DNA of 64,000 nucleotides, taken from Podarcis cretensis (lineage: Eukaryota). The stretch spans positions 59,458,001 through 59,522,000 of the forward strand of contig OX638153.1 in NCBI GenBank assembly GCA_951804945.1, written 5' to 3'. The notes beneath the pieces were generated by a model. The model saw only the letters and a list, made by a program, of their open reading frames with translations. It was not told where the DNA came from and made no database searches. Shown here in pieces: positions 8,091 to 32,659 of the stretch (the first letter of the stretch is position 1; every line of letters starts with the position of its first letter). The position numbers and the translations under genes are program-made.

Positions 8091-8460
8091 TTTGATAAAG
8101 GGCAGAGTTGACCAGCTGCCGGAAGACGGGAAACCACAGGCTGCTTTCAAGGGGCAGCATAATGGACAGCACAGTTCCCCGAGGTGCTGGTGACATCACA
8201 TGCCACAATTGCACCAGCTGCAGCAAACTGCTCCAGCAGTCTTAGGATGAAGGTGGAAGAGGCCCCCCCCCCCAGCTGCAGGCAGCTGTGGTGAGACAGC
8301 AATGTCTTGCCCACACAATCCAGCCTATGTAGGATGAAGTATTGGTATTCCTGGTAGTGGAGGAAGGCGCAATATGCCCCCTGCCCCACCTCAGGACCCT
8401 GGCTGGTATGCCAGGGTCTTGTTACTCTTCCACTATGTAGGCAGGGATTTTTTAAATGAA

Positions 8461-8466
8461 AATAAA
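8461..8466 (+). terminator. Probable ZDHHC16 polyadenylation signal
   Basis: AATAAA about 370 nt after the stop, followed by GT/T-rich sequence. Confidence 0.7.
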
Positions 8467-9222
8467 AATCATTTTAATATGGTGTGGCATCTGTTCCTCT
8501 TTAGCAGAAGAGAAGGCACAATGGTGGCAATATCTTAAGAAACTGATTGATCTCTCTATAGCTCGCAACTGTCTTTTCAGAACAGATTCCAGGCAGTGCT
8601 GTTTTTACAGATAGTTGTAGGTCTTAAGAGATTTTGTTGGTCCCGGCCATTAGGTGTAAGGCCTTGGGGTGAAGTCTAAAAATATCTTTCAAAAGCCACA
8701 GATTGTCCCTACTCTTGTATATGTACCATTGCCAATTTTCCACTCTGTTCACCTCTCACCAAACTGCAGGTTTCTGTAGCCCTTTCAAGGCAGCAACATG
8801 AGAAGCTGATGCTACCTCTCAGTGTTCCGCCCTTCCATGTTTTTACAAATAATTTATGAGTAGTCCAGAACTAGTGGTACATAGTAGGATTAAAGGGGGT
8901 GGGGTGCTATGCAGGACTGGTTTTGTTTGACTACCTGAAACTCAGCTATGGAGCATGTATGAAAAGCAGCCCTGAGAAGTGTATGGTGGGGGGTTCTGTT
9001 ATAATAGCCAGGGGACATATGCCATTAAGCACTGCTTTCTTTGCAACCATCTACTTAAGAAGAGTAATTAGGCCTTTAACACAGCCCCAGGCCCCACCAT
9101 TAATTCAAGTTAAGGTGTGGTCAATGGCTAGACCAGTGTTTCTCAAACCTGGATCCCAACTCAAAACAAAATAAAAAAATTTCTTCCAGTAGCACCTTAA
9201 AGACCAACTAAGTTAGTTCTTG

Positions 9223-9260
9223 GTATGAGCTTTCGTGTGCATGCACACTTCTTCAGATAC
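9223..9260 (-). ncRNA. Second minimal hammerhead motif (mirror copy)
   Basis: Same core on the minus strand; stem I shortened to 4 bp (GTAT/ATAC). Confidence 0.65.
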
Positions 9261-9276
9261 GTGGTATCTGAAGAAG

Positions 9277-9318
9277 TGGTATCTGAAGAAGTGTGCATGC
9301 ACACGAAAGCTCATACCA
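9277..9318 (+). ncRNA. Minimal type I hammerhead ribozyme motif (Penelope-type)
   Basis: TGGTAT-CTGAAGA-A-GTGTG(CATG)CACAC-GAAA-GC-TC^ATACCA: 6-bp stem I, intact core, predicted cleavage after C9312. Confidence 0.8.
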
Positions 9319-9799
9319 AGAACTAACTTAGTTGGTCTTTAAGGTGCTACTGGAAGAAATTTTTTTATTTTGTTTTGACTATGGCAGACCAACACGGCCA
9401 CCTATCTGTAACTGGATCCCAACTGTTGGTGGACTACAATTCCCATCACCCCTGACCACTGATCCTGCTAGCTAGGGATGATGGGAGTTGTAGTCCAACA
9501 ACAGCTGGGGACCCAGGTTTGAGAAACGCTATTCAAGAGTAGGCACCTTGCCAGCAAACGTCTTACACCTAGGAAGGGTAAAGCATGGCCTCTCTACCAC
9601 TGAGGCTCAGCTGTTTTCCAGCATGTACAACGCTCTATGTCATGGCCAGTCATGTACTTTCATCGATTTTCAAATGCAGTTCTATTATGTTCATTAATGA
9701 GGGTTGTCACTGGAAAGACACAGCAGAGGAACTAGGGAGCTGTAACCTTTAATGCCATGTATAAATTTCAGATGGGCAGCAGTGGCACTCTTTAAAAAC

Positions 9800-9805
9800 T
9801 TTATT
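9800..9805 (-). terminator. Candidate distal MMS19 poly(A) signal
   Basis: AATAAA on the minus strand about 790 nt after the stop. Confidence 0.55.
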
Positions 9806-10324
9806 TGTAGAACACTTTCCAAACAAGCAAACTACCACCTCATTGCAGAATGCCACACAGGGGCTCAGGTGGATTTCTGAACTCATTTTACTGCCAAAGG
9901 CAGCTGCAGCTTCACCAGTTTAATACCAGTGGCTGATAATGAAGAAAGCAAACAACCACCAGCCTGCACTTACAGAAAAAGGCATACCAGATCAGTCAGC
10001 ATCTTCCTATGCTAGTTTGCTAGATTTCTCCAGCAGGTATCACATCAGACAGAACGTTCCTAGACACCTAGGCTCAGCTCTTGCAACTTGTATTCAGAAA
10101 TATTCTGTATTAAAGTAATTCACTGTTTGATCTTTGCATGAGAGGTGCTAAGTTCATGCAGTAGGCTTTAGTTCTATTAGCACATGAAAAATCTCTCTGT
10201 GCGCAGACACCATTATGGCAGGAAGGTGGGGAAGCTGCACTTAATATAAGGTGAAGGCAAGACCCTTATTTCTACTACTTCCCCACAAGAAGCACTTTTG
10301 CCAGAGGCTGTTAGCAAACAAGTT

Positions 10325-10330
10325 TTTATT
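10325..10330 (-). terminator. Candidate proximal MMS19 poly(A) signal
   Basis: AATAAA on the minus strand about 265 nt after the stop. Confidence 0.5.
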
Positions 10331-10593
10331 CTTCTGGCCCCATACATACATAATATATGGGGGTCCTGCCACCTCCACTCACTACCGCGCTGCAGCAGGA
10401 ACAGGGGCTGGCTGTTCCTTCCTACTGAACGCTGATGTTGTGATTAGGAAAGGGCAGTCCACAAAAAAGTCCTCTTCTGCCCAGAGCCTTGCTGCTTTGC
10501 ATGGAAATCTAGGCCCCAGGACATCAAGGCCGACAGCTTACCAGGTGAGTGGGGGCAGGTGAGATTGTCAGTCAGGATTTGCAGTGTGAACCT

Positions 10594-10621: not shown

Positions 10622-13600
10622 CTGAAGAAAAAGACCACCACAGCGGGCTTTAGCAGCAGCAAAGCATGAACAAAAGGAACCCTTTTAAAAATCTATTTAT
10701 AAATAAATAATTACCATTTCTTTACAAATTTAAACACAACTTTACATCCAAATATCCTTGACTTCCCTTCCCCCTCCTCCCATCCCTGGTTCATTTTATT
10801 AACTCTTTTATGCTACATATTCTATCCCCCCCCCACCATTCTCGTTTTCCCAGTTTTATATCAAAATATTTCTTACTGCTGAATTTATTCTATTCCTGTT
10901 AACATTTTAATGTGTTTACAATAATTCAGATATTCTACATTTCTTTTCAAGTCTTCCTTATACTTTTTTTTCATCCTGATTGCTTAGTCAGAACCCAAGT
11001 TATTAATCCAAACCTCTACGCTCAATCAAAATGGCTTCATCACATCTGTACAAGGATATGTCAACCTACCTCCAATTTAATTACAGTGAGTCTCAAGGAC
11101 AGCCAAGTCGAGCACCTACAGTGTATTTAAGTTGGTACTGTTTTTTCTACGCTGTCCCCCAAGAGAAAGAGTCCTGCTCACCATTCTCCTCGTGCTGCCA
11201 CAGCTTCCTTCCGCACCAGCCGCTTCTTGTCATCCAGGGGTTTGGCCAGGGCTCGAATCACTCGTGGCTTGTAAGGTATCACCTGGTAGCAAGCAGAAGC
11301 CACCATCAATGAGGTTCCCACAGTTCCCATGGAGGTCTTAATACCTGTTTGTGCTAGCAACAGGAGACAAGTAGATCTTGGCACAAGTAAGGCAAATGTT
11401 GGAGCATCTGGCAAGCTATCGGGCAGATCCATTACTTACCACCGGAGTGGGGAGGGAGGCAAGTGCATGGAGGCACTGTAGCGCAGCAATGCGGATTGCC
11501 TGCAATATAAATGGTAGATTTAGTCTTCTGCTGACCATCCAGGAAGAAACCGGGAGTATCCAGCTGCATAAAGAGGCTACCCAGTACTCACCATAGCAGG
11601 GTTGTTTGTCAGGCTGATAAATTTGCCCACGAGTGTGTCGACGTGCAGGCTCATGACGTGCGGCGCCTCGAGCAACAGCGGCTGTAGGCAGTGCAAAGTT
11701 GAGAGCTGCACCACAAGGTCAGGACATGACAGAGCTTCCAGCAGGAGAGGTAGCAACTGGGGGATAAGAGGGTAGAGTCATGAAATCAACAGAATTATAG
11801 AGTTGAACGTGACCCTAAGGATCATTTAGTCCAACTCCCTGCAACGCAGCTGTCCCACACAAGGACTGAGCCTGCAACCTTGGCACCATGCTCTAACCAA
11901 CTGAGCTGTCCTAGCTGAAAAAAGGGGGGGGGCATCATTCTTCTCCATAATATGCCCCACCCACAAAATAATTCCCAAGAGTTCTTAGGGCCTGGTGCTC
12001 GGCACAGCTGCACACTCACCGTAGGCAGCTCTGTCACTAGCACTGGTTTGGGCAGGTGGTTCAGTATGTGAGACAGGCCTTTCAGGTAATTCGCCTTCAC
12101 ATCTAGGAAGAACAGAAGGGCAAGACTTAAATCTGTGGCTCCGAGGAGACTCATCCGAAAAGGTTATGACCATTTAGAAACTGAATAGCAAATGACCTCT
12201 ACAGAGCCTACAATGAAGACCACCTCTTGCCAGTAAAGAAAAGCCATTTGTTTGTCCCATGTAGCAGGCAGAGTAGGTGAGCTCACAGTTTTGAGCTCTC
12301 CTGCCCAAAATCATCTCCAGAAACTCCGAGGGGTCCTTGAAGAGGAAGAAAAAGGCGAGAGGCTCAGACTGCTCCTCTTGTTGTCGAGGGTTCAGAAGCT
12401 CCTACTGTCCAAAGAGGGCTACAAAAGGCAGGTCATGCAAGGAGTCCACAATTTCTGCAGACAAAAAAAATGCTAAAATGCTGCAGTAGCTTCCTCATTT
12501 CAATTTGACCATTATTCCAACTGTGCTCCTCCTGTTAATTCAGATGCTTTTCGTAAGGAATGGGACAAGAGGAAATTCTTACCAGGAGCTGCTGTGTGGA
12601 AACCCTGCACCAACTGCGGCACACACTCTGTGAAGAAGCGCTGGCGGAACATGAGGCGCACCTCAGCGTGGCAGCTCTTGCCCAGCACGTCTGGGGAGTC
12701 GGCCATGAGCAAGGCAAGGCCATCGCCCACCGCAGGGCCAAGGACCGTGTCCCCCAAAAGAATGAGGAGCTGTAAGGTAATAGACAGGAGCCATTGAATG
12801 TGGTAAGGGCACAGTGGCCTCCCTGAGGGTCCCAGGCCTTTCCCAGAAGCTCACCTTGTCCGTCAGGTGTGTGGTTAGCGGGTGGTAGCGTAGCAACAGA
12901 GCCTTGCTCACCTGCAGGGCAAAAATAAAGGAACATTGAGCTTTGTTTCTGGCAGAGACAGGAGGGATGGGGCATGGCAGAAACTCACCCAAAGCAGCAG
13001 AGTGAGCGCTTGGCTTTGATGAGGACCCTCATTTAGGCCATGCTCCAACTTGTTCATGGCCAGCTCCAACAGCTCATCTAACTGAGGCCCTGGAAAGGGT
13101 AAAGAGACTGGCTGTTTTTCTGAGCAACTTCTTGCATCAGTCAAGCAGGGCATCACTTAACACAGCCCAGCTCTGAGGTTTCACGAGCCTCTGAACAACA
13201 TCCCCAGCCCTTCAGTCCTAGGACAGACTCCATCGGTTACCTGCTGGGTGCTTGTTAACCAGTCCTGCAAAGCATTTGGCAGCAGCTGTGGCAGTGAAAG
13301 GGCAGTCACAGGAGCAGCTCAGGGCTAGCAGTTCACGTAGCAGGCGGTCTTGCTGAGGAATTGGAACCTGAAAGGAAGCCAGAGCGTGGGGAGGCATGGA
13401 GGCAACAGCAGAGCTTCAAGCTGCCGGTTCCCAGCATCACTTGCCTAGGGATCAGGCACACAAGGCAGGATGGGTAGATCTATTCTCGCAGCCATGAGGC
13501 AACCTCCCACCGTCCCCATCCCCCCCCCCCAGATCTTCCCCAGGACTCACATTCCTTGGCAGTGAGCAGACAAAAGCCATGAGGAGCGCAACAAGCCTTC

Positions 13601-16600
13601 TCTGGGCTGCCATCAGACACTGCCCATCCTGTAAAGGAAAAGAAATATTGTTTCCACTACCAAAGTCTCTGGCCACATTTCCCCATATGCAGCAGCAGCG
13701 CCTCACTCATACAAAATACCTGGAAGGGCTGGAAAGTGCTGGGAAAGGTGTTTCCAGGTTGGAAGGAAAGGTCTCCATCCAAGAAGAGGGGAACCACTTT
13801 GGAGACACTCTGGGCAGCCTGCCTGCCAGGAAGAAGAAACAAGAACACTGGTTTACAGCACATAATAATATAACAATTCATTATTTATATGCTGCCCATC
13901 TGACTGTGTTGCCCCAGCCACTCTGGGCAGCTTCCAACAAATTTAAACATCAAACTTCCCTATACAGGACCTCCTTCAGATGTCTTCTAAAAGTCAAGAT
14001 AGTTGTTTCATTTCCTTGACATCTGACAGTAGTATAGTATATTCCCCAAGGAGGGGAAGGGGAGACTGCCTGCACTTCTGTTCACCAAGTCATGCTAGAA
14101 CCTGACCTTATCCAAAAGCACAAAGATTGTGCATCACTACTTGTCACTCTGCAGGGACAGAGACCACAGGATGGCAGCAGCTGCTACTCACTCTGGTCTT
14201 AAGTGCGTACACGCACTGCTGATGACCGATACCATGGCTGATAAGGCTTCTTCCTTCAGCAGCACACTGCTTGGCAATGTATGGGAATTCTCTGAAAATA
14301 GTTATGAAGAAAAAAGGGGGGGGGGAATAAATGTGAGGGGATGGAGACAGTTCCTGGAATCCCATCAGCTGCCTTTCAGCTGGGAGCCAGTGTGGTGTAG
14401 TGGTTAAGAGCGGTAGTCTCGTAATCTGGGGAACCGGGTTCACGTCTCCGCTCCTCCACATGCAGCTGCTGGGTGACCTTGGGCCAGTCACACTTCTCTG
14501 AAGTCTCTCAGCCCCACTCACCTCACAGAGTGTTTGTTGTGGGGGAGGAAGGGAAAGGAGAATGTTAGCCATTTTGAGACTCCTTAAAGGGAGTGAAAGG
14601 CGGGATATCAAATCCAAACTCTTTCAGTTTGCCACCTGCATAATGGACACCTGACAGGGACACTGAGATTGGCCCCAAGTGGGTAAAGGCCAGCCCAGCA
14701 CAAGGGAAAGGTACCTCCCTTTCTCTCAAGTTCTAAAGTATATAGAACCCCACCTGAGCTATGGGTACTGGCCTGGTTCGGGGAGCACAGGGTCTGTGCT
14801 CATCTCCCCACCTTACCTTGCATTGCAGCCTTGACTGCTAAGCCCACCAAGAACGGCACCACAGCCTGGTGGAAGTACCAGTAACTCTGAGCATCTTGCT
14901 GGCACTCGAATGCTACCTGCTGCAGACTCTGGCACACCGACACCACAGAGTGGGTATCTGCAGGTATACTCCCTGCAAAATAAAATAAAAATCAAAAGAG
15001 CATTCAGGGTGGAGACTACCAGTTCCAATGTGTTTTTCTTTTTAAAAAAATACTAATACATTATCACCAGGGCCATTTAAAGGCATCACATTGTGTCAGA
15101 AATGGGTCATGGGCCAAAACAGTCAAAGACTGATGGTCCTAGGCTTCCAACAACAAGCTGTACTTCTGTCCCACTAATGACAGAATTATGGGACTGTAGG
15201 CACCTAAAGGTTACCAAAGCTCAGTGTACAAACAGCTCTCTACTAACCCCATCCATAGGAACAAGGAAGCTCTGCCTTACAAGGAGTCAGGCTCCTGGGT
15301 CTACCTAACTCAGAGCTGTCTACACTGACTGGCAGTGGATCTTCAGTGTTTCAGAAAGGAAGTCATGGAAACATAAATTGTAGGGTTGGAAGGGACCCTG
15401 GGGATCATCTAGTTCAACCCCCTGCAGTGAGGAATATGCAGCTGTCCCATACAGTGATCAAACCTGCAACCTTGCCATTATCAGCACCACACTTTAACCA
15501 ACTGAGCTATCCAGTCTTTTCTGGAGATGGCAGGGATTGAACCTGAGGCCTTCTCCATGTTTAGCAGATGCTCTACTACTGAGCTGCAGCCCTTCCCAAT
15601 CTTACACATCCTATTAATGAAACACAGATGCTGAGCCCTTCTGTTATTGCTGTCCCAAGCACTGGGCTAGGTTCCTCGCTTCCGAAGTATCAATAGTTTA
15701 TCATATACAATTTTTACACTACCTTGCTGAATCTGCTGGAAGTGCTGCAGGAGGACTGGAACTGTTTCCCTCACTATACTAGGGTGCGTGGACACAGCTG
15801 CTAGAGCCTGCAGGCGACGTTCCTGCTGGGATGGATTGCTGTCCTCCTGAAGCTCTGAAACAGCACACAGAACACAACAGCCAGTCAATGAATTTGTCCC
15901 TAGGGACAGGGCCATGGAGGTACCACCTTCTACCCCTCCACATGAACATGGATTTGGGAATGGTTGATTCTTCGACCTGGAGCTAACCTATCTGTCTGCC
16001 CATTTGGCCTTACTCACATACCTCAGGGCACAGAGACCGCGCAGATTCAAGTCAAAGCCCCCTGCAACGGCTCTGCCTACAATGCAGCTAGCACTCAGGG
16101 ATAGACACTTTGAACTTCTGCACAAATGCTTAGTAAAGGCAGCATAAGAGAGGACACCCACTTCCCCACAACCCGCCCACCTTGCATGCTGTACCTGATT
16201 GCAGCCCTTCTGAGAACTTCTGCACCAAGCACTTGCTGAAGGCTTGTGGATAGAGGGGAGCCAGGCGTCCGGCCGCCTCCATAGCTACCATGCTGCAGGG
16301 ATAAAGGAGTGTGTAAGGATGGATGAACTTGTTGGTCACTCAATACCGTAAAGCAACTCACAGTTCTTTATGGATTAATCTAATTTTATAATTGTAATAT
16401 TGAGCTGTGTGTGCACTACATTTTATAAAAATGTTCACTTGATTACAAGAGCTCTTTGGACAAGAACGCAGGTTAGACAGCGATGCAGACTGCCCAGGTT
16501 TTGTTAAGCTCACTCCGCCCGGGTTCATCTAAGAACTTATCAGAAGAGGGTAGGATTCTCACATCACTATAGAAACTATGAAAAGGAATCACTGGATTTG

Positions 16601-19600
16601 TTTGGGAACTGTCCTGTGACTCGCAGGTTTGGATGCACTGCGCACTGAATAGGAAATGCAGGAAGGCCAGAGGAAAAGATACAGCACTTGAAATCTTAAA
16701 ACAAACAACAGGATGTTACCAAGCTAGACATTTAAAAAAAAAAGATTTAAAGAATATTACACTATGAGGGACATTTTTATGGAAGAATGTTTAACTACAC
16801 TATTGGGTTCAGACTGAAATGAATCTGTGCTAAGAGAAGGAGGATATGAGCTCTATTCACACATTAGCATGATAAACCAAAGAATGTTTTAGTACAAAAC
16901 TTAAGATTGAAAAAAGATCATAAAAGCAGTATTAGTAAAGCCCTTCTCTTAATTAAAACACATGCAAACCTTAACAGATCAGTGTAAGACAACACCAAAC
17001 AGAAGCAGAATTTTGGATTAAGAAATGAGTAATTCATGAGACTGTATTAGAAACCTTGTCATTTGCCATTTACAGGTAGTGGACTAAAAGAATGTAAACA
17101 TTTTCAATATTTAGAAAGAGATAAGCCCAAAGACAATTCTGGGAAGTTCAACAATGCCTGCTGTTTCCCTTGCACCCACAGGGTCCAGCTTTGTTTCCAC
17201 CCCTCACCTGGTCTGGGAATCGTCCTCATGCAAGATTAACTTTGTAAGGTGATCCACAAACATCTCCACATTTGAGAGGGTCAGGAGCCCTGAAACGGAA
17301 GAGAGACTGAAGTCCAAAGCCCTTCCTTTCCCTGGTAGTAACACTCTGCTATCAGTGCCAGTTTTACTATATTGCATTCCACTTCCTAGAGGCTGCCTGC
17401 AGCCCATATAGTCCAAGTTATGCAAGGTGGGGTGGGACAGTACCTAATCTGATTCAAGTCCAGCTGTCTGGCTGCACACACATGATGGAAACAGGTCTGT
17501 GTGCACGCTAGATGGATCTGTAAAGGAATGCACACCAAGGGGAAAATCTCTAAACAAGCCGCAATTCTTCCATGACTCCTGGGAGTAACCCACAGATCAA
17601 CACATACCTTGCAGTGATCCTAGAAAGGTCAGAATCCGGATGCCAACCAACTGAAGTTGCACACTGGACTCAGAAAGTGCAGAGAACACCACGGAACACA
17701 GCGCGTCTTTGAAGCAAAGCAGTGGACTCTTGTCTGCAAGGGAGAGAAACAGGCACACAGGCAGTATCATGAGACTGACCATCCCGGGCACGAATCACTA
17801 GAAATTACAAGGTCCTTGGTAGGGGCACTTTAACTTTCTAACCCGGAGTCTGAGAGGATTGTGATCAGAATTTAGATAGTGAAGAATGAGAAACTTCCTA
17901 AAATTCTGAGTGGTCAGCAATGGTACAGATGGATTGCTCATTAAGAGCAGTCATCCACCAAGGTTACTCAACTGCAGTCACCATGTCATCCTGCAAAGAG
18001 CATTTCTACTTGGTCACTGAAAGCCAGGCTCAAAGAAACTTTGGTTCTGGAATATTTGGCTGGAGTCCCAATTGCATTGCATTTAAAGCACTCTCATGCC
18101 ACTTTAAACAGTCATGGCTTCCCCCAAAGAATCCTGGGACCTGTAGTTTGTTAAGGGTGCTGAGAATTGTTAGAAGAGGGATTGCTTGTTAAACCACTCT
18201 GGGAATTGTTGCTCTGTGAGGGGAATACTGATCTCCAAGGTGATATGATACTGCTTTAAATGTGTGTAGTTGGAACCCAACTCTTGTGCATACATTTTCT
18301 AAGACTTCTCTCACCAACCACAAGGGCTCGAATTTCTTCTGGGAAGCTATCCTGTCAAACTCTTTGTTTTTCAATTCTGTTGTCTCCGCATTTCTCTTCT
18401 CCCTATTACTGCACCTATCTCACTGCCCGCCCCCCTTCCCAGACAGGCCATTGCTAAATCCCATAGATTAAGGCGACTTTTCTCTGCAAACAACTGCTCT
18501 GGGCAAGACAGGAACATTGGAAGCCCAGGATGCTGCAGAAGGGCAGCCTTGCTGGTAGGAAACAAGAAGAATGGAGAACCATCTCACCGTCTTCCTCAGG
18601 CCCCCACTGTTGCCGCAGCTCCAAGAAACCAAGCAGCACTTCCAAGATTGTCCTGTGCTGGCTACTCTACAAGAGATCAAAAAGGGCAGAGGATGGGTTG
18701 AAGGGACTAAGACACAGAAGGAGAGACAAGATCTGCAGGTCATTGTCCTACATGGAATTTGAGCCCAAGTGTATGCCTGGGGCAGGTATATGCCACTAAA
18801 CGTCCCTTAATATGAGATTGCAATCACCTAAGCCCCTTTCACTACTCTCCACCACAAGCATATTCCGCTCCCATTTGTCCTCACCTGCTCATGCTTGGTG
18901 TACTGTTCCACCAGCAAGGGAAGTACACTGTATGTGATCCGGTAATAGGCTCGCAAAGAGGCCCCTGCAGCCGCCTGCAAGAGTTTGGCACTCGGCCACA
19001 CCAGCTTCATGTCAGGCTCACAAAGATGGTGTCTGCAATCTGAAACAGGTAAGAGCGCCTGGGAGAAACAGTATCACTCCCAATGCCACTGCAGAAATCC
19101 CAGCAAGAAATAGCACTACAGTGGTGCCTCGCAAGACGAAATTAATTCGTTCCACGAGTTTTTTCGCCTTGCGATTTTTTCGTCTTGCGAAGCACGGACT
19201 TTGGAAAAGCTTCAAAAATCACCAAAGTCTTCAAAAACCTCAAAAAAGGCTACCACACCGCGTGCTATGAGTTGCTCTTCGAAGTGAATGCACGGTTTTA
19301 AGAAAAAGGAAACAAACTTGCAAGACAAAGGAAACAAACTTGCAAGACGTTTTCGTCTTGTGAAGCAAGCCCATAGGGAAATCCGTCTTGCGAAGCAACT
19401 CAAAAAACGAAAAACTCTTTCGTTTTGCGAGTTTTTCGTCTTACGAGGCATTCGTCTTGCGAGGTACCACTGTACTTAATTCCACCAGCTTGCAAACTGC
19501 AAACAGTTTCAAAGCTTAGTGGAGAATTTGCTACCTTCCCACAAGTCAGCTCCAGTTTCCACCCCTTCCCTCCAGTCCTGTAAGCCAAATCATGGCTGCA

Positions 19601-22600
19601 ACAGCATGACAAGATATTTTTCCCTTGGGGGAAGTGGTCATTTCCTCCAAGCAGCAGTTTATGAATGAGAAATGGAAGGTCTTTCACAGGACTGGAAAGA
19701 TGCTAGAAAAGGGATGTTGCTCCAAAGGTTACCTCGCAGAATGCCTGTAAGGAAGGAATCTAAAAGATCCTCATCATCGGAACTGAGCACCAAGCGGGAC
19801 AGACATGTTGACAGAGCACGCAAAGCAGACAGACCTTCTGCTTCAATCTTCTCGCTTGCTGTCTGGAACACCTGTTGAGGAGCAGGAGGAGAATCAGCTG
19901 TACAGTGCAGACAATCCTGCAAATAATCCAGTCAGTGATCCCACAATCCAGCAAGTAAACCAGTGATCCAGCCAGTGATCATAATGAAGGGGGGTTATTT
20001 GCTTCTTTACAGATCCATCAAATATTACAACAGCCTGATAATTCACTGTAATGAAACTACTCTATTGGTCCGAATATAAGCCGTGCCTTTAAAATTCAAG
20101 GGAGGAAAAGGGAGGGGGATACCCGAATATAAGCCGCTTCCTTAAAATTCTGCATGCACTCACACTCGTTCCATTTTACCGTATATCTGTTTCAGCAGCA
20201 ATATCATAAAAGCCAATTTTTGTAAGGTCGTGAATGTAAATTTAAACCACACTTTAACTTTTCACGGTCGGAAAAAAAGTGAGGCTTATATTCAGGCCAA
20301 TGCAGTATACAGTGGTACCTCGGGTTAAGAACTTAATTCGTTCTGGAGGTCCATTCTTAACCTGAATCACCACTTTAGCTAATGGGGCCTCCTGCTGCCG
20401 CTGCTGCACGATTTCTGTTCTCATCCTGAAGAAAAGTTCTTAAACCGAGGTAATATTTCTGGGTTAGCAGAGTCTTTAACCTGAAGTGTATGTAACCTGA
20501 AGTGTATGTAACCCGAGGTACCACTGTATAATGTTTCAAGCAGTCCCCAGACACAGAGAGCAGGAACCATGTAATGGATGCACTTTCACAGAACACCAGA
20601 ACCACCTCGCTTTGGGAATCCTTGCTCCTCTCACCTCCCTACGCAGGGATGACCAAAGGCTGGGTAGGAATTCCTTCAGCTCTTTCTCCCCATAGATCAT
20701 GCAGGCAGCATTCTGCAAAAGAAAGGAAGTGGGGAGGGGGGAGAAAGAGTCAGACATGAGTCATCTGGGGTGTGCTGTTAATTTGCAGTCAAGATGCTGC
20801 ATTACCTAGAAGCAGCACCAAAGCCGCCGCCACCCCTTAAATCAGCTTTGAGGAAAGCTGCAGGAGCAGAGAGGGCTGCATGGCAACCTACTGTGGAGCC
20901 TTGATACTTTTGCTCAGTGCTCTTACCAAGGTTTGCAGGGAGTCCAGCTTGGCACTTTGTACGTCAGAGTCCATTTTCTCAATGAGCAACGGGATCAGGA
21001 ACTGTAAGGAGAGAAGATCCTGGAAATCTCAATATACTTTGCTCAGCATAATTTGGGGTTATAATATACCTCAGAAGATCAGACCAGCAGGCCTCACAAA
21101 ACAATGTAAAACCCATATAAAGAGCACAATGCAATACTCCCCACTGATACCACCTTGGTGGTGACTGGGTATTTGTGTTAGAATACTGCAGTCTGCTATC
21201 ATCTTAGCCAAAAGGGGAGTGTCCATCATTGTAGAGGGCCTAGATTCACTCATGCAGGCAGGAAGCTACCACTGGCAGTATCCACTAGAAAGCTCTGAGA
21301 GGGTCATCAGGCTCTCAGCTGCACCTGCCTGGAGCTAGTGTAGCAAAAAATCAGGAAAAAACACTCCCCACCTTTTGCATGGCATGGCTTTGGATATGAT
21401 GCTCAGGTGCTTCAGCTCTGCCCACTGCTGCCTGGCCAGGGTTAAGATTGCTCTGGCAGTTTCTAACTTTCTGACTTTATTCTAATTCTATGAGGGGCAA
21501 AATATACCTATCACGGCAGCAATTTGTGTAGCATATGGGCCATTTCAGAGAGCCATTAATCCCAGCTTTTTTAAATAAAAAAAGCAAATATTTATTTATA
21601 TCTATAAATCAAGCTCTCTGTCCAAAGTCTGATGGTAGTAGCAGTCTGAAAGATCAGTGTTGGGAAATGCAAAAGGACCAGAGAGTAAATTTACTCCCCA
21701 ACTCATATATCTGAAATAGACTGAAGTCTCAAAGTTAAGGGCAAAATTATCTCTACAATATGCTTGTTCTGGGATTAAATGCATTGGCTTATCCTAATGA
21801 AGGCTCTGACAATGTGATGCTCCCATCAAGAGAAGAAGGAATTTTCACCTTGCAACCGCTTTGCCCTTCAAAAATCTTGTCCTGAGCAGCATGAGAGGTG
21901 GTGTAAGGGGGAGGAAAGATCTGCAATCAATGTTCCCTTCCCCAACACCTATATATTCATAGAGGGCTTTTTAGGATCCAAATTGCTGTGCACCACTACA
22001 GCAACATCTTCTGTTGATTAGAATAAACTATTACAAATGGCTGCATTATGGGCCCCAGTAAGGGAAGTTTTTAATATTTGATGTTTTATTGTGCTTTTAA
22101 TTCTTTTGGAAGCCGCTTAGAGTGGCTGAGGAAACTCAGCCAGATGGGAAGTGTATGTATGTATGTATGTATGTATGTATGTATGTATTATTATTATTAT
22201 TATTATTATTATTTGTCCACCCCAACTCTGTCAATGTATTATTGCTCAACATGGTGTATCAAGATGGGAACCAACTCTGCTACAGGGTCTCAGGAAGAAC
22301 CCACAGGGCACAAAAAACAGACTTCAGCCATGATACACAATGGCCCTACCTCAGCAAAAATGGGAGTAGAGGTCAGCACTGCCCGCAGGCTGATGATCAA
22401 GTCTTCTCTCTGGATTCCATGAGGATCATTGGAGGGCTGGAACAGAAGCAAAATCGAAAGATTTAGACATGAATGTGCTGAATAAACCCATCTCCATATG
22501 GACACCCCCAGTTCCAGGCATTACACAAACTATCCTGCTCCAACACCCATATCCAAGCATTGTGGAGGGACAAAGCACCAGATTTACTCACTCACAGGGG

Positions 22601-25600
22601 TAAAGTCGATGGGGAAGTAGCAGGAAGTCACCTCAAACAACTCCTCTGCGAAGGGCCCTGAGAGGTGAAGACAGCAGTATGAGTTCTTTGTTTGACCAAA
22701 ACAGTCACTCACAAGTCTGGACATGGACTATTTAGTTGCATCTTATTTAGTGCTACCATTCTCACAGGCCACAAAGAGAGAGAGAGAGAGAGAAAGAAAG
22801 AGAGAAAGAAAGAGAAAGAGTGTGCTCCATGGCCTCAACAGCAGATATAACCTGTGGTTCTATGTTCAATGATTCCAAAGCTATGCACACTTTAACAAGC
22901 TCCCCATACAGCCTGCCTCCTCACACACCGCAGGCATGATAAGAAGTTTAACCAACCAACCAACCAACCACTGCCAACATGGGCTTCTCCACACTGACAA
23001 GGACTTGGACATACCCAATGCATAGCCCTTCACAATGATGTCTCGTACAATCTGGAAGGCTATTAACAGGTTGCGTGGGTCCTTCTCTCCATCCATCACC
23101 TGGATGAACCCGAAGGTGAAATCGGCACCCAGACCTTTCAGTTCTGCAGGAAAAAGCGTCAGGTAAGGAAATTCCCAGGGTTTTCCAGTAGGGTGTCTGA
23201 CTCAGCCCCTTCCACAGCCATCCATCTCACCTGCCTCTCGGTTGCTCATGAAGTTAGTAATGATACTGTAGATTGTATGGCGATCCGCTTGCAGCAAAGA
23301 CTGGAAGATAAGAAAAGCATAGCTGGGAAATAAAGCAGTATTACGTGAACCTGTTCCAAGCATTAGAGATTTATGGTTTTGTTCTGATCCTCTCCAGTTC
23401 ATGCTATCATACTCTGGTCCATAGATCTGGGTGCCTAATTTGCCAGAAAGACGATTAAGATACTGCAGGCAAGTCAGAAATTTACACAAACCCAGCTGAA
23501 GGCCAGGACCTTCCATAACATCCTCTCTACCTTTATTTTTAGTCTTGCTGAGAGTAGCTCCAATTACCTTAATGTCCCATGTGAAAAATCAAGATATACA
23601 CATTCACACCGGAACTAGAGGCATTTTCACAGCAGAATTTGCATACATTACCACACACAAAGGATACATGTGTCCACTCCTTTTACAAGGAGTAAAATTT
23701 CGTCTCGCCTCGCAAGACGAAATTAATCCGTTCCGCGATTCTCTTCGTCTAGCGGTTTTTTCGTCTTGCGAAGCAAGCCCATTGACGGCTTAGCGGATTA
23801 GCGCTATTAGAGGCTTATCAGTTTAGTGGATAAACAGTTAAGCGGCTTAGCGGCTTAGAAAAAGGGGGGGGGGAAGGAAAAAAAAGTCGGAAAAACTCGC
23901 AAGACATTTCGTCTTGCAAAGCAAGCCCATAGGGAAATTTGTTTTGCGAAGCGCCTCCAAAATGGAAAACCCTTTCGTCTAGCGGGTTTTCCGACTTGCG
24001 AGGCATTCGTCTTGCGGGGCACTACTGTATATTTAATTACTCAAGGCTAAGAGAAGTTGCCACGATCTCATCTTGTCCACCCACCCAACTACTCTTTCAA
24101 ATAAGGTTATTAATAAGGGCAGTGGGGTGTGGGTAAAGAATGGCAGCTAATATAGTTACTTGCCAAAGGCAACTTAACAAGTCATGATAAATTTGAACCT
24201 ATATCCAACTCCGGTGACCTATTCCCTCAGGCCATGTTTCATAGTTTTATTTATTTATTAAAGAACTATCTCTAGCCTGCCTTTCTTGGCAATGGCCATC
24301 CAAGATGACTTACAACAACGGCCCATTACAAAATATCAGTAATACAGCCATAAAACCACCAAGTCTCAGATTTTCTAATATCGTTTAGACAGTGTCAAAG
24401 AGCAGGGGATATGATTCTCAGAACTTCTGCCGTGACCCAGTGCTTCAATTCTCTTGACAGCAAGAAAATATCGATGAGCAGGTCTTAGTCAAGAGAACTA
24501 CTGTCTATTGTCCACCAAGAGGGACCTCAGGAGGTACAGGATACTTCAGGAACTAGTTTAATAATAATAATAATGAGAACAGAAAGGCTGAAGCATGGAT
24601 GTGGAACACAAAGGCAAAATTAGAGAGTCTATCAGGGCTTCTCTGACTTACCTGGACATGAACCTCCTGGAAAATGGCTTTGAGAACAGACACTGCCAGA
24701 CCTGGAGCCAACGCCACACACATACTCTAGAGACAAGGAAAGTAACGGTAACAACTCAGTACCCATCTACATGTAACAATGGCTACCGGTTAGCATGCTT
24801 AAGGCCTCAGTCTGCCCTGTATGGCATATTATCGGTCAGTGCAATGGAAACAAACAAAAGGAGCCCATCATTTAATCAATGTGACAGTGACCCAATCATT
24901 AAGAGAGAAAAGGGGGGGGGATTCACTGTTAACTAATCCCTATAAATCCCAAGTAGATTCAGAAAAGATTCTTTCTACACCAGCACCTACTACCTTAATC
25001 AGCCTGTCTTGTAGCAGCTTTCACTGGTCTCAGTTAAACGAGCCAGAGCTGTCAATCTGCTATCCTTGGGGCACCCCAATTTTCTACTACTGAGCAGATG
25101 AATAGATAGTGTCCCCAATTTTGCCACAAATTGCTATCACTAGATTATTTCTGCAAGGCTTCTTATGAAAATTATTTGCTTTTTTGCAATAATCTTATCA
25201 GGTGATCCATTCTGTATTTCTGTTTCTTTAATATATTTTGCTCCAATTTTATTGTGTTATGATGGTTTGGTTTTAACCAAGATTTAGGGCACCACATACA
25301 TATATTAAGTTGCAATATAGAAATGAATAAACGATAATGACTACCATGAAAACAATTCTCACCAGAGCTTTAAGTCCCTGCAGCACAGAAGAGATGACCA
25401 GGTGATGATCTTTCAGCCGGTTCTCATAGAACAAGACCAGGTGGGACACTGGAACAGACAAGCATTATCAGAAACTAGGGCTATGGTGGTAGTTGGGCTT
25501 AGCTAACACAAATAGAGATATCCATGGGGCATATTGGCATCCACATCAACCTCAGCATATTTGAAAGGATGAAGGAAAATGCAGAATCATTAGCGGCCAC

Positions 25601-28600
25601 TTGGCAATACAGGCATTCTCCCCCTACTCTTGGCTCCTCAGACCTATTTTAAAAAATTCATCTGATGACCGGTAAGTGGTTGCACACAAGCATAAAATAC
25701 CTAACACTATGACCAAAGAAACAGCAAGAGGACATTCTGAAAGGGAAACTGCAAGGTTACTGAACACTTAAGATCCCCCATTTCATAAGACATTCAGCGG
25801 TGCAGAACCATAGATCAGACTGCCACTAATCATGTGTTCTTGGGATTGCAGATATTATTATGATTATGATTATTGAAAGTTAACGATGAATATGCTACCC
25901 ACATAGCTCTGGACCACAGCATGGTAAGGAGGTTCCTGTCAAGCCACTCAGGGATGGACACTGCTAAGGCTCTGAAACTAGCTTATACTGTACACATTTG
26001 GGAAAACTTAGGCAGGAGTCTCAGTATTCCAGGAGAGTCATACCATTAAGTCAAACCCTCCCTCCATGTGCCACCCTAAAATCCATAATCCTCTTGAAAG
26101 TACAAAGTACATTACTCCTTACTGCTTCGGTAAGGCACTGCCTTCCATCTTCACTCTCTTCCAAACATTTAACTGCTTTCTAACAGAAAGTTAGAGCTTT
26201 CAATAAACCTGAGTTCACCCCAGTTACTCAGCAAAGAAGCATATGGCATGTCATAAACCACTGAGTCATTGAATCCTGCCTGCCTAACCTCCTGCTGCTA
26301 ATCACTACCTCAGGCATGATCCCTTGAAAGCTGAGGCCAGCTCCTGAAGCAGCACTCTCCATGGTTGCAAAAGAGTGAGGACTGAGCCCATATGTCCTAC
26401 CTTCCCGCTCTTGAAGGAGGGAGTAGCATTGCAGGAGGACTTCAGAAAGCGTTTGGATGCCCTGTGCACGCATTCGAGGATCTGCATTCTTAAGAGGAGA
26501 CCTGTATTTATAGACACAAAATGAAGATTTTACAGGCCATAGCAGGAAGAGAAGACAGTGAAATATGCTGTTTTAGCGAGTTTGTTGGGGGGGGGGCAAA
26601 GAGAGACAATATTCTGATTTAATTTGACGATTCAGTTAAGTGATCAGTTTCTCTTCCTTTTGCTCAGGGCTTCATAAATTATGGGCCAACATAAAAGTGA
26701 TTAGGAGAAAGGCTGTAGCTCAGTGGAAGAGCACTTGCTGTGCAGGCAGAAGGTCCCAAGTTCAATCCCCGGCTTCTCCAGGTAAGGCTGGGAAAAACTC
26801 CCTGCCTGAAACCCTAGAATGCCAATGCAAGACACTGTCAACAATACTGGGCTAGATGGACCAATGATCTGACTCTGCCCAAGGCAGGTTCCTATATCCC
26901 TACATTATGTGTTTGGCTTCCTCCCTTTTGTCCAGGGCATCATGATTTATTGGCTGGTTTGGGCTAGTTTAGCTTTAGGGAAATGGAGCCTAGGCCCCAC
27001 CAGGCTCACATGCTCCATCATCTGACCATTGTCTGGGCAACAGGAGTTCAGAAGCTTTGGCTTCTCTTCTTGATTAACTACAAGCTCGCTGCATCACTTA
27101 AACCTTGACAAACTGTGGTTAATCTTCACTGTGGGAAGTGGAAACAAGCCAGCTTCAAATCACAGTTAATGAAGTTGGCTTGTTTTCACTAACTATTAAG
27201 ATTAACTACAGTTTTGGGTTCACATGACATACTAAACCATGATTAATCTAAAACTGAAGTGAAAGTTTTCAATCAAGTGGTGACTGTGCCGGATGAGGCA
27301 TGGGGGACAGGTAGTGTGAAGTCTGTGGGGAGGCTAGGCTCAATCTAAATTGATTTGCTTATTTATTTTTAATTTGTACTTATAGCCCACTCTTCACCAA
27401 ATGGCCCCAAAAGTATCTCAATTAAAGCAATATCTGAATGCAACCTATGACTTGGATTTTGTAGCCAACCACTTTGTCATGGTAGCCTGTGCTGATGTCT
27501 AACCCTGCCGCAATATGCTCAGCATCAGCTACTGGCACATTACTGCCGATGGAAGACTGCTATACAGTTTGGTGTAGTGTGTGGTGTAGTGGTTAAGAGC
27601 GGTAGTCTTGTAATCTGGGGAACCGGGTTTGAGTCTCCGCTCCTCCACATGCAGCTGGTGGGTGACCTTGGGCCAGTCACACTTCTCTGAAGTCTCTCAG
27701 CCCCACTTACCTCACAGAGTGTTTGTTGTGGGGGAGGAAGGGAAAGGAGAATGTTAGCCGCTTTGAGACTCCTGAAGGGGAGTGAAAGGCGGGATATCAA
27801 ATCCAAACTCTTCTTCTTCTTCTTCTTCTTTAAAGTAGGGATCAGGGAGCTGTGGCCTTCTAGTTGTTCTAAGACCTAACCCTAACCCTAGACTCTCACA
27901 CATCCAGTCTCAGCCAGGATGGGCCATGGTCAGGGATGATGAAGGCTGCTGTGGTCCAACAACACTGGAGAGCCAAACGTTTGCAATTGTTTAAAGAACA
28001 CTGACGTGTCAATATATTCTTCTTTGCTCTGTTCTGGTCCACCACAGAGGTGCTCTTCACTCAACAGACTGCTTCCTTGCAATGAGCAATGACTACATCT
28101 GGCAGTCTGACCATCAGGATAAGAAAGGGAGTTTTCATTTTTCCCTTTCAGGCTGATTCCCACCAGAGCAATATACTCATATTAGGAATGTGAAGGGAGT
28201 GTGGAGGGAGAGCATTTGAGAGAATAACTACTTGTCTAGTAAATTTGTGGTCAAGGTAAAATTTAACCAATGATTTCCTGGCTTGCAATCCAAATTTAAC
28301 CTCTATGCTACATTGAGAGGAGGGCTCATCACCACCATTTAACGCAGCCACCAGCCTAGGCCAAACATCTACCCATTAGAGTGCCCTGCAGTTTACCTGG
28401 TTGGCTAAATGGAGGCGCTAGCAACTGCTCTGCCAACAATATGTACACCTAACTGCCAGATTGCAAGGGAAATACTGGGAAGACATGAAAGCATGTAGGC
28501 CAAAACCTTGAGTTATGCACTGTAGCTGAAATTCATCCCAATGTCAGGGAAGCAAAATGTTACACATTATCACCACCAAATCCATAATGCTATTCCAAAG

Positions 28601-31600: not shown

Positions 31601-32659
31601 CATGGTAAAGCAGCTCTTCATACAGCTGCAGCTACATCATGATGGATTCCTAAGTGGCTATCACACCACAAATAGTCATCTGAATTATGATAAACTACCT
31701 ATATTTTCTTATAAAACGTTAAGTAAACAAGCCAGTGTTTCTAGGAAGAAAAGTATGCCTCTTCATGATGATGGAAACTCAAGAACACTTCAAAATCCTT
31801 TAACAGTCTTTAAATGATTCGTTCTTCTCTTGTATTTTTAAGGTAGCTTGGGTGATTAAGGGTTAGGTTTCCCTATCTTTTCATAGTTTTACAGTAGAGG
31901 CAAAGGAAATAGATTAATGAATGGTAGAAAAGAACAGGTCAAGGAAACAGGAAATTATATTGAATATGCCCAGGTCCGTAGGCTCTCTGTTGATCTGATC
32001 CCCTGGAAAAGTACATTCCTGCAAACACACATATGGTTTTATCTCTAGTCAGCCTTGCCTACAGCAGCCTCCTCATACCCAACCTCAACACACGCGTCCA
32101 GCTCATTATCGTCTCTGAAATAATCTTCAGGAGGCGAAACAGCTCGTTACTTTGCCCCTAATTAATGCCGTGCGTCACACTGCCTCGCCCGATCCACACC
32201 CTGCATGCGCCCACCGTTACCGCATGCCCGACTAGCCCAAATTAATGTCAGTACGTCTGATCCCGATGTGGGTGGATGGAATGAAGTTAGGCAGAGGCAC
32301 TCTGCACACGCCCAGAGAATCTCGTTTGCATTCCTTTACACACTCCCCCGAATGAATTCCGACAGTGAATTCCGATCTTGAGCATAGATCCAACTGGGCG
32401 ATCTTTCTCCCTGACACCTAAGCTCACCTCCTCCTCCTCCGTCCCCGCAGACGACCCCTCGAACCGCAGTTTCGGTTCCCCTCTCGCCCCGCCCGCGGCA
32501 CTGCCGGATCCCGCCGCCTGCTCCGCGGCCCCGGCCTCTGCCCCCCGCCCCATCCCCACACGCACCTTCCGCCGCCTCTCTGGCCGCGCCTTCCCGCTCC
32601 CAGCCCGGCAACAGGGACGCGTCCGCCCCCACGTCCACCTCAGCCCCTCCGGCCGCCAT
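10594..32659 (-). CDS. MMS19: MMS19 cytosolic iron-sulfur assembly (CIA) targeting component, full spliced CDS (31 exons, 3063 nt, 1020 aa)
   Basis: 31 exons with canonical GT..AG boundaries and consistent phases. Motifs DGEKDPRNLL, FEVTSCYFPIDF, EPDMKLVWPSAKLL, MFRQRFF and LDDKKRLVRKEAVAARGEW match recalled human MMS19. Confidence 0.97.
10683..11100 (-). mobile_element. Decayed L1-like 3' remnant in the last MMS19 intron
   Basis: AT-rich; shares the ttgacttccc..ccatccct 3'UTR motif with the two L1-like copies. Confidence 0.45.
11182..11282 (-). CDS. MMS19: MMS19 exon 30
   Basis: VIPYKPRVIRALAKPLDDKKRLVRKEAVAARGEW. Confidence 0.97.
11440..11499 (-). CDS. MMS19: MMS19 exon 29
   Basis: AIRIAALQCLHALASLPTPV. 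Confidence 0.96.
11592..11756 (-). CDS. MMS19: MMS19 exon 28
   Basis: LLPLLLEALSCPDLVVQLSTLHCLQPLLLEAPHVMSLHVDTLVGKFISLTNNPAM. Confidence 0.97.
12020..12102 (-). CDS. MMS19: MMS19 exon 27
   Basis: DVKANYLKGLSHILNHLPKPVLVTELPT. Confidence 0.97.
12583..12769 (-). CDS. MMS19: MMS19 exon 26
   Basis: LLILLGDTVLGPAVGDGLALLMADSPDVL...MFRQRFFTECVPQLVQGFHTAAP. Confidence 0.97.
12855..12911 (-). CDS. MMS19: MMS19 exon 25
   Basis: VSKALLLRYHPLTTHLTDK. Confidence 0.96.
12989..13089 (-). CDS. MMS19: MMS19 exon 24
   Basis: GPQLDELLELAMNKLEHGLNEGPHQSQALTLLLW. Confidence 0.96.
13241..13367 (-). CDS. MMS19: MMS19 exon 23
   Basis: VPIPQQDRLLRELLALSCSCDCPFTATAAAKCFAGLVNKHPA. Confidence 0.96.
13551..13628 (-). 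CDS. MMS19: MMS19 exon 22
   Basis: DGQCLMAAQRRLVALLMAFVCSLPRN. Confidence 0.96.
13720..13822 (-). CDS. MMS19: MMS19 exon 21
   Basis: QAAQSVSKVVPLFLDGDLSFQPGNTFPSTFQPFQ. Confidence 0.95.
14192..14291 (-). CDS. MMS19: MMS19 exon 20
   Basis: ENSHTLPSSVLLKEEALSAMVSVISSACTHLRP. Confidence 0.94.
14382..14622 (+). mobile_element. tRNA-derived SINE (Squam3-like)
   Basis: A box TGGTGTAGTGG, B box GGTTCACGTCT; near-identical to 27577-27830; short TSD CTTTCAG. Confidence 0.85.
14817..14972 (-). CDS. MMS19: MMS19 exon 19
   Basis: GSIPADTHSVVSVCQSLQQVAFECQQDAQSYWYFHQAVVPFLVGLAVKAAMQ. Confidence 0.95.
15363..15510 (-). mobile_element. Short tRNA-head / CR1-tail SINE
   Basis: AGCTCAGTTGGTTAAAG head joined to a CR1-like GGGTCCCTTCCAAC tail; relatives at 11785-11915 and about 61020-61155. 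Confidence 0.65.
15723..15854 (-). CDS. MMS19: MMS19 exon 18
   Basis: ELQEDSNPSQQERRLQALAAVSTHPSIVRETVPVLLQHFQQIQQ. Confidence 0.93.
16195..16292 (-). CDS. MMS19: MMS19 exon 17
   Basis: SMVAMEAAGRLAPLYPQAFSKCLVQKFSEGLQS; weak donor gtacag. Confidence 0.92.
16550..17120 (+). mobile_element. Possible decayed L1/Tx1 ORF2 C-terminal remnant
   Basis: A-rich; ESLDLFGNCPVTRRF resembles the ExxxHLFxxCP motif. Confidence 0.3.
17208..17289 (-). CDS. MMS19: MMS19 exon 16
   Basis: GLLTLSNVEMFVDHLTKLILHEDDSQT. Confidence 0.95.
17608..17733 (-). CDS. MMS19: MMS19 exon 15
   Basis: DKSPLLCFKDALCSVVFSALSESSVQLQLVGIRILTFLGSLQ. Confidence 0.96.
18588..18666 (-). CDS. MMS19: MMS19 exon 14
   Basis: SSQHRTILEVLLGFLELRQQWGPEED. 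Confidence 0.96.
18885..19039 (-). CDS. MMS19: MMS19 exon 13
   Basis: DCRHHLCEPDMKLVWPSAKLLQAAAGAS...EQYTKHEQ. Confidence 0.97.
19119..19472. mobile_element. Tc1/mariner-type MITE, family A
   Basis: TIR CAGTGGTGCCTCGCAAGACGAA; TA TSD; internal TCGTCTTGCG repeats. Confidence 0.9.
19733..19871 (-). CDS. MMS19: MMS19 exon 12
   Basis: VFQTASEKIEAEGLSALRALSTCLSRLVLSSDDEDLLDSFLTGILR. Confidence 0.97.
20060..20305. mobile_element. pogo/Tigger-like MITE, family C
   Basis: TIRs CTCTATTGGTCCGAATATAAGCC / GGCTTATATTCAGGCCAATGCAG, flanked by TA. Confidence 0.75.
20310..20526. mobile_element. Tc1/mariner-type MITE, family B
   Basis: TIR CAGTGGTACCTCGGGTTA; TA TSD; TAACCTGAAG repeats. Confidence 0.9.
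20635..20712 (-). CDS. MMS19: MMS19 exon 11
   Basis: NAACMIYGEKELKEFLPSLWSSLRRE. Confidence 0.97.
20927..21001 (-). CDS. MMS19: MMS19 exon 10
   Basis: FLIPLLIEKMDSDVQSAKLDSLQTL. Confidence 0.97.
22153..22212. repeat. (TATG)n(TAT)n compound microsatellite
   Basis: Seen directly. Confidence 0.95.
22350..22436 (-). CDS. MMS19: MMS19 exon 9
   Basis: PSNDPHGIQREDLIISLRAVLTSTPIFAE. Confidence 0.97.
22596..22657 (-). CDS. MMS19: MMS19 exon 8
   Basis: GPFAEELFEVTSCYFPIDFTP. Confidence 0.97.
22772..22820. repeat. (AG)n/(AGAA)n purine tract
   Basis: Seen directly. Confidence 0.9.
23015..23143 (-). CDS. MMS19: MMS19 exon 7
   Basis: ELKGLGADFTFGFIQVMDGEKDPRNLLIAFQIVRDIIVKGYAL. Confidence 0.97.
23231..23300 (-). 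CDS. MMS19: MMS19 exon 6
   Basis: SLLQADRHTIYSIITNFMSNREA. Confidence 0.96.
23707..24027. mobile_element. MITE family A with a damaged left TIR
   Basis: Homologous to 19119 and 45823; right TIR ends ACTACTG-TA. Confidence 0.85.
24652..24726 (-). CDS. MMS19: MMS19 exon 5
   Basis: SMCVALAPGLAVSVLKAIFQEVHVQ. Confidence 0.96.
25363..25448 (-). CDS. MMS19: MMS19 exon 4
   Basis: VSHLVLFYENRLKDHHLVISSVLQGLKAL. Confidence 0.96.
26401..26501 (-). CDS. MMS19: MMS19 exon 3
   Basis: SPLKNADPRMRAQGIQTLSEVLLQCYSLLQERE. Confidence 0.95.
26703..26900 (+). mobile_element. tRNA-derived SINE (GCTCAGTGG..GGTCCCAGGTTCAA family)
   Basis: A/B boxes; relatives near 15290-15597 (-), 28980, 38830, 49375, 53290 (-) and 60783. 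Confidence 0.7.
27577..27830 (+). mobile_element. tRNA-derived SINE (Squam3-like) with (CTT)n tail
   Basis: Near-identical to 14382-14622; older relatives at about 53975-54312 (-), 59150-59355 (+) and 63655-63845 (-). Confidence 0.85.
28797..28845 (-). CDS. MMS19: MMS19 exon 2
   Basis: GVKAGTCTILDVVENLG; 49 nt. Confidence 0.92.

Follow-up and report, generated by a model that had tools for sequence, protein, structure and literature searches.

The 252-bp cassette at positions 9161-9412 of the window (the whole 64-kb stretch of DNA that was analysed) is, in our judgement, very probably a young, lineage-specific retrotransposon insertion of the Penelope-like element (PLE) type, whose hammerhead ribozyme motifs would serve the life cycle of the element and not the host. 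The lack of a host function is what we infer, whereas the inverted repeat, the motifs, the target-site duplication, the tail, the restored host repeat, the copy number, the energetics of the hairpin and a sister-species contig without the insert are direct results of the analysis.

A repeat search found two arms of 100 nt each, 9161-9260 and 9279-9378, that are 100% complementary (0 mismatches over 100 bp) and separated by a spacer of 18 nt, which bears out the perfect 100-bp inverted repeat described in the first-pass annotation of this DNA. The parts of the insertion, and of the repeat into which it is set, are the following.

9128-9537 (own parts 9128-9160 and 9413-9537), unstranded: palindromic MITE-like host repeat, interrupted; recognized by its inverted repeats and by copies elsewhere in the window
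9150-9160, unstranded: target-site duplication, left copy (TGGATCCCAAC); the identical 11-mer stands at 9413-9423
9161-9260, sense on the minus strand: left arm, a complete or near-complete copy of the mini-element without tail; 100% reverse complement of 9279-9378
9170-9175, plus strand, and 9369-9364, minus strand: AATAAA hexamers, one at each entry of the cassette (hexamer search)
9261-9278, plus strand: head-to-head junction, GTG together with an additional copy of the element's opening 15 nt (GTATCTGAAGAAGTG); found by direct and inverted repeats and by TRF
9279-9378, sense on the plus strand: right arm, a mini-element copy; found by the inverted repeat, and starting at the usual 5' end of family copies
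9379-9412, plus strand: one-sided, AC-rich tail of 34 nt (...CAGACCAACACGGCCACC...), after the right arm only and with no left counterpart
9413-9423, unstranded: target-site duplication, right copy (TGGATCCCAAC), identical to 9150-9160

The cassette thus combines an 11-bp target-site duplication, inverted arms of 100 bp and a one-sided tail of 34 bp, and this is the signature of PLE insertions, for which Craig et al. describe a target-site duplication, an adjacent inverted copy, a tail of 30-40 bp at one end and a hammerhead ribozyme in the pLTR. The target, TGGATCCCAAC, is not AT-rich. In the predicted fold, AGACCAAC of the tail pairs with GUUGGUCU at 9331-9338, at a z of -0.8, which is not better than shuffles. 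TRF reports the junction repeat with a period of 15 and 2.2 copies; this is the sole tandem feature of the cassette, and head-to-tail tandem units of the retrozyme kind are absent from it. Within the window, neither a pattern search allowing 3 mismatches nor blastn at word size 7 found further copies of the ~100-nt unit, and no reverse transcriptase or GIY-YIG ORF was found beside the cassette or elsewhere among ORFs of at least 140 aa. With no coding partner in the window, it is the architecture and the motif that tie the cassette to PLEs, and the element is classed as presumably a non-autonomous copy or a terminal fragment instead of an autonomous PLE.

Among the public contigs of several related species, the host repeat (...GGACTACAAYTCCCATCAYCCCT...AGGGATGATGGGAGTTGTAGTCC...) also reaches an extremely high copy number. 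Against Rfam mir-5408 and mir-3160, its score is 45 bits, which lies under the threshold and hints that these miRNA families may derive from MITE-like repeats of such kind. Annotation of the cassette as a miRNA precursor (MIR1222, mir-581 and others) was rejected, the matches being below the gathering score and reflecting the long hairpin only.

Deletion of 9161-9423 in silico made the MITE-like repeat collinear across the junction with its window copies at 53579-53700 and 54157-54298. Evidence from public runs was taken from Logan contigs, the depths of which are rough only. One contig of 6825 nt from a sister species (organism B, contig 17) aligns to 8140-9129 and, 8 letters on, to 9412-9520, with the insert missing; it is ~1.4% diverged in the flank, and it terminates within the MITE, where it has 25 gap positions. 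Organism B therefore probably carries the empty site. For organism A, of the same species as the window, a contig of 135 nt crosses 9160/9161 with 26 letters inside the insert, where the junction threshold is 31 letters, and hints that the insert is present there. Given the target-site duplication, the empty site restored in silico and the sister-species contig that lacks the insert, the insertion is by all appearances young and not conserved. The identity of the arms would agree with youth and bound the age only loosely.

The family to which the cassette belongs is far from rare. In organism A, the summed contig depth over 9160-9412 was ~2 million, against ~70-130 in the unique flanks, and over the wider 9160-9567 (the insert and part of the MITE) it was 2-3 million. 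In organisms B and D, the depth over the cassette was ~1 million, against 7-18 in the unique flanks. Per run, 17,000-28,000 contigs were matched. Both the insert and the MITE that hosts it thus belong to very high-copy families in several related species. In many contig junctions, 9279 or 9296 is joined to one of various points in the left arm, which indicates that other copies of the family are also inverted pairs, with differing joints. In each of three species, 21-27 contigs begin their match at 9277-9279 after unrelated AT-rich letters. This common start of family copies lies at the base of helix I, which places it 34 nt upstream of where cleavage is predicted; hence, the 5' end of inserted copies is not produced by hammerhead cleavage. 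Two scans of metagenome contigs with ribozyme patterns of 25-26 nt found nothing.

The same contigs bear on whether the palindrome, or its perfection, is an artefact of assembly. Tandem and inverted PLE structures trouble assemblies (Craig et al.), and the short-read contigs break inside the repeat, leaving the central junction at 9261-9278 without independent confirmation. However, an independent same-species contig shows the left junction and extends 26 nt into the insert, three species have plenty of inverted junctions from this family, and a target-site duplication together with a one-sided tail forms a coherent biological signature. We therefore give an artefact almost no credence and retain the reading of the cassette as a genuine PLE-type insertion.

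All conserved bases of a minimal type I hammerhead ribozyme (min-HHR) are found in each arm, giving one motif per strand.

9277-9318, plus strand: min-HHR motif, UGGUAU-CUGAAGA-A-GUGUGCAUGCACAC-GAAA-GC-UC-AUACCA
9223-9260, minus strand: min-HHR motif, mirror of the plus motif, with a helix I of 4 bp and predicted cleavage after C17 at 9227

In the plus motif, helix I (9277-9282 with 9313-9318) encloses the CUGAAGA core (9283-9289), one extra A (9290), helix II (9291-9304), GAAA (9305-9308), G-C (9309-9310), U (9311) and C17 (9312). Helix II consists of GUGUG/CACAC and is closed by G9291-C9304, and AGCU at 9308-9311 stands in for helix III. Natively, stem I of the plus strand has 4 bp; it reaches 6 bp only via the junction-specific 15-nt duplication, in which 9261-9275 equals 9276-9290. 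The canonical type I core (C3-U4-G5-A6-N7-G8-A9, G12-A13-A14, A15.1/U16.1 and H17) was found on both strands. The sequence of helix II, 9291-9304, is a perfect palindrome of 14 nt (GTGTGCATGCACAC) with an ATG within it; from this ATG, at 9297, the frame closes after 9 codons.

A loose CUGANGA...GAAA pattern had 6 matches in the window, where 7.3 were expected. Because this pattern is no rarer than chance, a strict min-HHR descriptor was written: CUGANGA, 0-1 extra nt after A9, GAAA, U16.1 and H17, with a helix II of at least 4 bp closed by G10.1-C11.1, complementary 15.2/16.2 and a helix I that is likewise 4 bp or longer. Across the 64 kb, its only matches were 9283-9312 (plus) and 9256-9227 (minus), and 300 random first-order Markov windows gave 0. 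The two matches are mirror copies of each other and count as one independent event. The right-arm hammerhead of the first-pass annotation, with its palindromic stem II and cleavage triplet at C9312, and its mirror on the minus strand with a 4-bp stem I, were thereby recovered. The search with hammerhead models was divided in its outcome, in that both motifs match the strict descriptor but no Rfam covariance model for a hammerhead matches at E≤10: none of the 25 matches from a scan of 8900-9650 at that threshold belongs to a hammerhead family, and a scan of the whole window at the gathering score returned no hammerhead. Neither motif has the closed helix III hairpin of canonical hammerheads with a curated covariance-model match. 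Since helix III is merely AGCU without a loop, it cannot close within one molecule.

These peculiarities are those of the min-HHRs of metazoan PLEs, which have no helix III loop, a palindromic 15.2-16.2, a residue that separates position 9 from 10.1, a G10.1-C11.1 pair, a long helix II, a short helix I and huge copy numbers, and which occur as paired motifs ~100-700 bp apart on opposite strands (PMC4209133). The cassette shares with them the CUGANGA and GAAA boxes, the unpaired nucleotide after A9 (between 9 and 10.1), G10.1-C11.1, the palindromic 15.2-16.2 in AGCU, the long helix II and the short helix I, as well as the massive copy number and the pairing of opposite-strand motifs a short distance apart. 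It differs from them in having no adjoining PLE ORF and in a helix II that is itself a perfect 14-nt palindrome. The reptiles named in that work are turtles and snakes, and the cassette family is likened to theirs by motif features, not by sequences. With this understood, the published hallmarks support the structural reading first given to the motifs, as Penelope-type minimal type I hammerheads of the kind that works as a dimer (PMC4209133).

A closer look at the likeness is offered by Poseidon_Ac, an anole PLE. At its unit junction, the Repbase consensus reads CTGAGGA-T-helix II-GAAACGTC, and its ORF starts at an ATG within helix II. The hammerhead layout of the cassette, CTGAAGA-A-helix II-GAAAGCTC, is like this one, and so are the ATG in helix II, the optional tail of 30-40 nt and the ending of copies in an AC-rich region ~70-100 nt downstream of the cut site (PMC11167929). 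In vitro, the Poseidon_Ac protein nicks and extends both DNA strands, and reverse transcription begins at two internal start sites in an AC-rich stem-loop, the tail being the stretch between them (PMC11167929); such nicking and extension on two strands would explain inverted double copies. By contrast, the two elements are not alignable by eye past the core boxes, the element of the cassette is non-coding, with an ORF of 9 codons, its target is not of the AT-rich kind that Poseidon_Ac prefers, and it forms an inverted pair whereas Poseidon_Ac is usually tandem (PMC11167929). The cassette is also like the non-LTR retrozymes, in that it is a short, non-autonomous, hammerhead-bearing repeat (PMC7229834; doi 10.64898/2026.07.22.740005). 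These are thought to be derived from PLE pLTRs and are enriched in intergenic DNA; however, they form head-to-tail arrays with canonical type I hammerheads and circular RNAs, whereas the cassette is a dispersed head-to-head pair with a loop-less helix III (PMC7229834; doi 10.64898/2026.07.22.740005).

On the anole Poseidon model, the cassette may have arisen as follows. A protein-less mini-element of ~100-135 nt, with a minimal hammerhead at its start and an AC-rich region for the start of reverse transcription at its end, would have inserted into the MITE within the intergenic gap between ZDHHC16 and MMS19. The element's GIY-YIG endonuclease would have cut nicks in the two DNA strands, 11 bp from each other, and each 3' end so exposed would have primed reverse transcription of an element RNA. 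Priming at the distal start site would give the right arm with its 34-nt tail, and priming at the proximal start site the left arm without tail. Both cDNAs would then have reached the 5' end of the RNA and joined head to head with a slip of 15 nt, which would leave a perfect palindrome that bears a hammerhead motif on either strand. With the left arm ending at the position equivalent to 9378 and the right one reaching 9412, the arms fit two priming events at two start sites.

The first-pass annotation had proposed another role for the motifs, that of an aid to co-transcriptional cleavage or termination in both directions: a sense hammerhead would cut read-through RNA of either convergent gene and thereby limit polymerase collisions. 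The genes and signals concerned are given below; gene identity was taken from Pfam on single exons.

From 3971 and from 5882, plus strand: DHHC-domain exons of ZDHHC16 (Pfam PF01529)
End near 8136, plus strand: last coding exon of ZDHHC16 (reading frame)
8461 and 8889, plus strand: poly(A)-like hexamers on the ZDHHC16 side (hexamer search)
9919, 9800 and 9748, minus strand: poly(A)-like hexamers on the MMS19 side (hexamer search)
11577-11756 and 15667-15915, minus strand: MMS19_C exons (Pfam PF12460)

The Pfam exon matches agree with the proposed position between convergent ZDHHC16 (plus) and MMS19 (minus). The distances given at the time, ~0.8 kb and ~0.55 kb past the poly(A) signals of the two genes, are roughly right, but nearer hexamers exist. 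With the complete min-HHR core on both strands, a cassette downstream of poly(A)-like hexamers of both genes is placed as such an aid would be. Transcripts may also come this far. In organism G, a relative that is ~4% diverged and whose small run is guessed to be RNA, contigs cover 8140-9127 continuously and so run beyond the two ZDHHC16-side hexamers (8461, 8889). Coverage of 9519-10442, where the depth falls, extends past the MMS19-side hexamers at 9919-9748. Transcripts may thus reach both edges of the repeat block in organism G, if the run is indeed RNA, and this may indicate 3' UTRs or read-through longer than the hexamers suggest.

RNA self-cleavage 3' of a gene as a means of shaping ends is an idea that the cassette would share with several known systems. 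The discontinuous hammerhead in the 3' UTR of rodent Clec2 genes and the CoTC element of beta-globin are locus-conserved and active as monomers. One engineered fast hammerhead cleaved co-transcriptionally and gave an exonuclease an entry point before termination; a poly(A) site and a pause element were likewise part of the construct. Unlike Clec2, CoTC and the engineered terminators, the cassette is a new copy of a repeat, sequestered in a hairpin according to the predicted folds and without a dimer partner. Moreover, the 5'-OH that hammerhead cleavage leaves is a poor substrate for Rat1/Xrn2, and in a tandem reporter, two efficient hammerheads do not stop Pol II from reading on.

The predicted folds speak against the proposal more directly. 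Taken alone, the 45-nt plus motif forms stems I and II in the prediction, at -12.5 kcal/mol (z -2.46), whereas with 37 nt of its natural upstream sequence it is predicted to form a 21-bp hairpin that pairs the CUGAAGA box, at -35 kcal/mol. The minus motif is weaker, with a predicted energy of -7.9 kcal/mol when alone (z -0.6); once 21 nt of its upstream sequence are added, a 15-bp hairpin of -22.5 kcal/mol is predicted to displace it. The whole cassette is predicted to form a single helix of 100 bp at -186.2 kcal/mol (z -26), so that the hairpin would beat the ribozyme fold by >170 kcal/mol. Transcription from either side makes the antisense arm first. This had been raised from the outset as a caveat; on the predicted folds, in which the hairpin displaces the ribozyme, it is decisive and not minor. 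Host read-through RNA would hold both ribozyme motifs paired and inactive in the hairpin.

Each transcript, furthermore, contains only one sense motif, and the cis dimer that a min-HHR needs cannot form. Dimerization through helix III was considered as a candidate and rejected, since in a two-molecule cofold it is the palindromic helix II that pairs in trans. For min-HHRs, cleavage is not detectable with a single motif and low with dimers (PMC4209133). The hammerhead of Poseidon_Ac cleaves only with its own protein present, and no RNA-seq reads start or stop at its cut site (PMC11167929). Neither orthologous conservation nor an accessible fold was found for the cassette: the sister-species contig lacks the insert, and the predicted folds pair the catalytic boxes. 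With one copy of a very high-copy mobile family, inserted recently and probably missing in the sister species, a role as host terminator finds no support and is in our view highly improbable.

An accidental effect on the host has a somewhat better, if still small, chance. The 100-bp double-stranded RNA could be diced into small RNAs directed at the element family, or be ADAR-edited, or an AAUAAA at either entry could act as a back-up poly(A) site. The perfect hairpin, at a predicted -186 kcal/mol and a z of -26, would favor the former and the AATAAA hexamers at 9170 (plus) and 9369-9364 (minus) the latter, and RNA may reach the repeat block in organism G. Yet organism G is the sole informative run, its RNA status is a guess, and an effect of this sort would have come along with a recent insertion rather than evolved as a function. 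Each entry AATAAA sits in the antisense arm, which is the first to be met by a read-through transcript from either side; these hexamers would be a candidate route to 3' ends that is more conventional than a ribozyme. For the host, the consequences are most likely none, or by-products such as a double-stranded hairpin in read-through RNA or use of the AAUAAA.

If the cassette is a PLE-type insertion, a ribozyme cassette between convergent genes is ordinary transposon anatomy, and there is no case for pursuing it as a host terminator. As an insertion, it is a clean young example, which keeps its target-site duplication, its two arms, its head-to-head joint and its one-sided tail intact, and its anatomy agrees with the model of two-strand nicking and dual reverse-transcription starts that comes from the in vitro work on anole Poseidon. 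A very abundant and probably still active family of mini-elements is thereby flagged in the lizard lineage. A stronger reading, which we hold to be possible but doubtful, is that the locus preserves, nearly pristine, the trace of target-primed reverse transcription on two strands by a lizard PLE system that is active at present, and that the element is a SINE-like minimal parasite of PLEs with >10^4 copies, still mobile and polymorphic between sister species; since convergent read-through RNAs may meet at its site, its double-stranded RNA may feed small-RNA or editing pathways. Were this true, the cassette would hold two complete copies of ~100-135 nt, with the hammerhead at their extreme 5' end and a stem-loop for the start of reverse transcription at their 3' end, each copy from one staggered nick and from a different start site of reverse transcription.

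Two further features of the window were observed around the neighboring genes. A tRNA-like sequence at 15522-15593 (minus strand), in an MMS19 intron, scores 31.2 bits, against an Rfam gathering score of 29, and has several non-canonical pairs; a functional tRNA is less likely here than a pseudogene or the head of a tRNA-derived SINE. The region 32287-36020 is G+C-rich, with long overlapping ORFs on both strands and translations rich in alanine, glycine and arginine. It resembles a CpG-island promoter region and perhaps marks the 5' end of MMS19 and a divergent neighbor.
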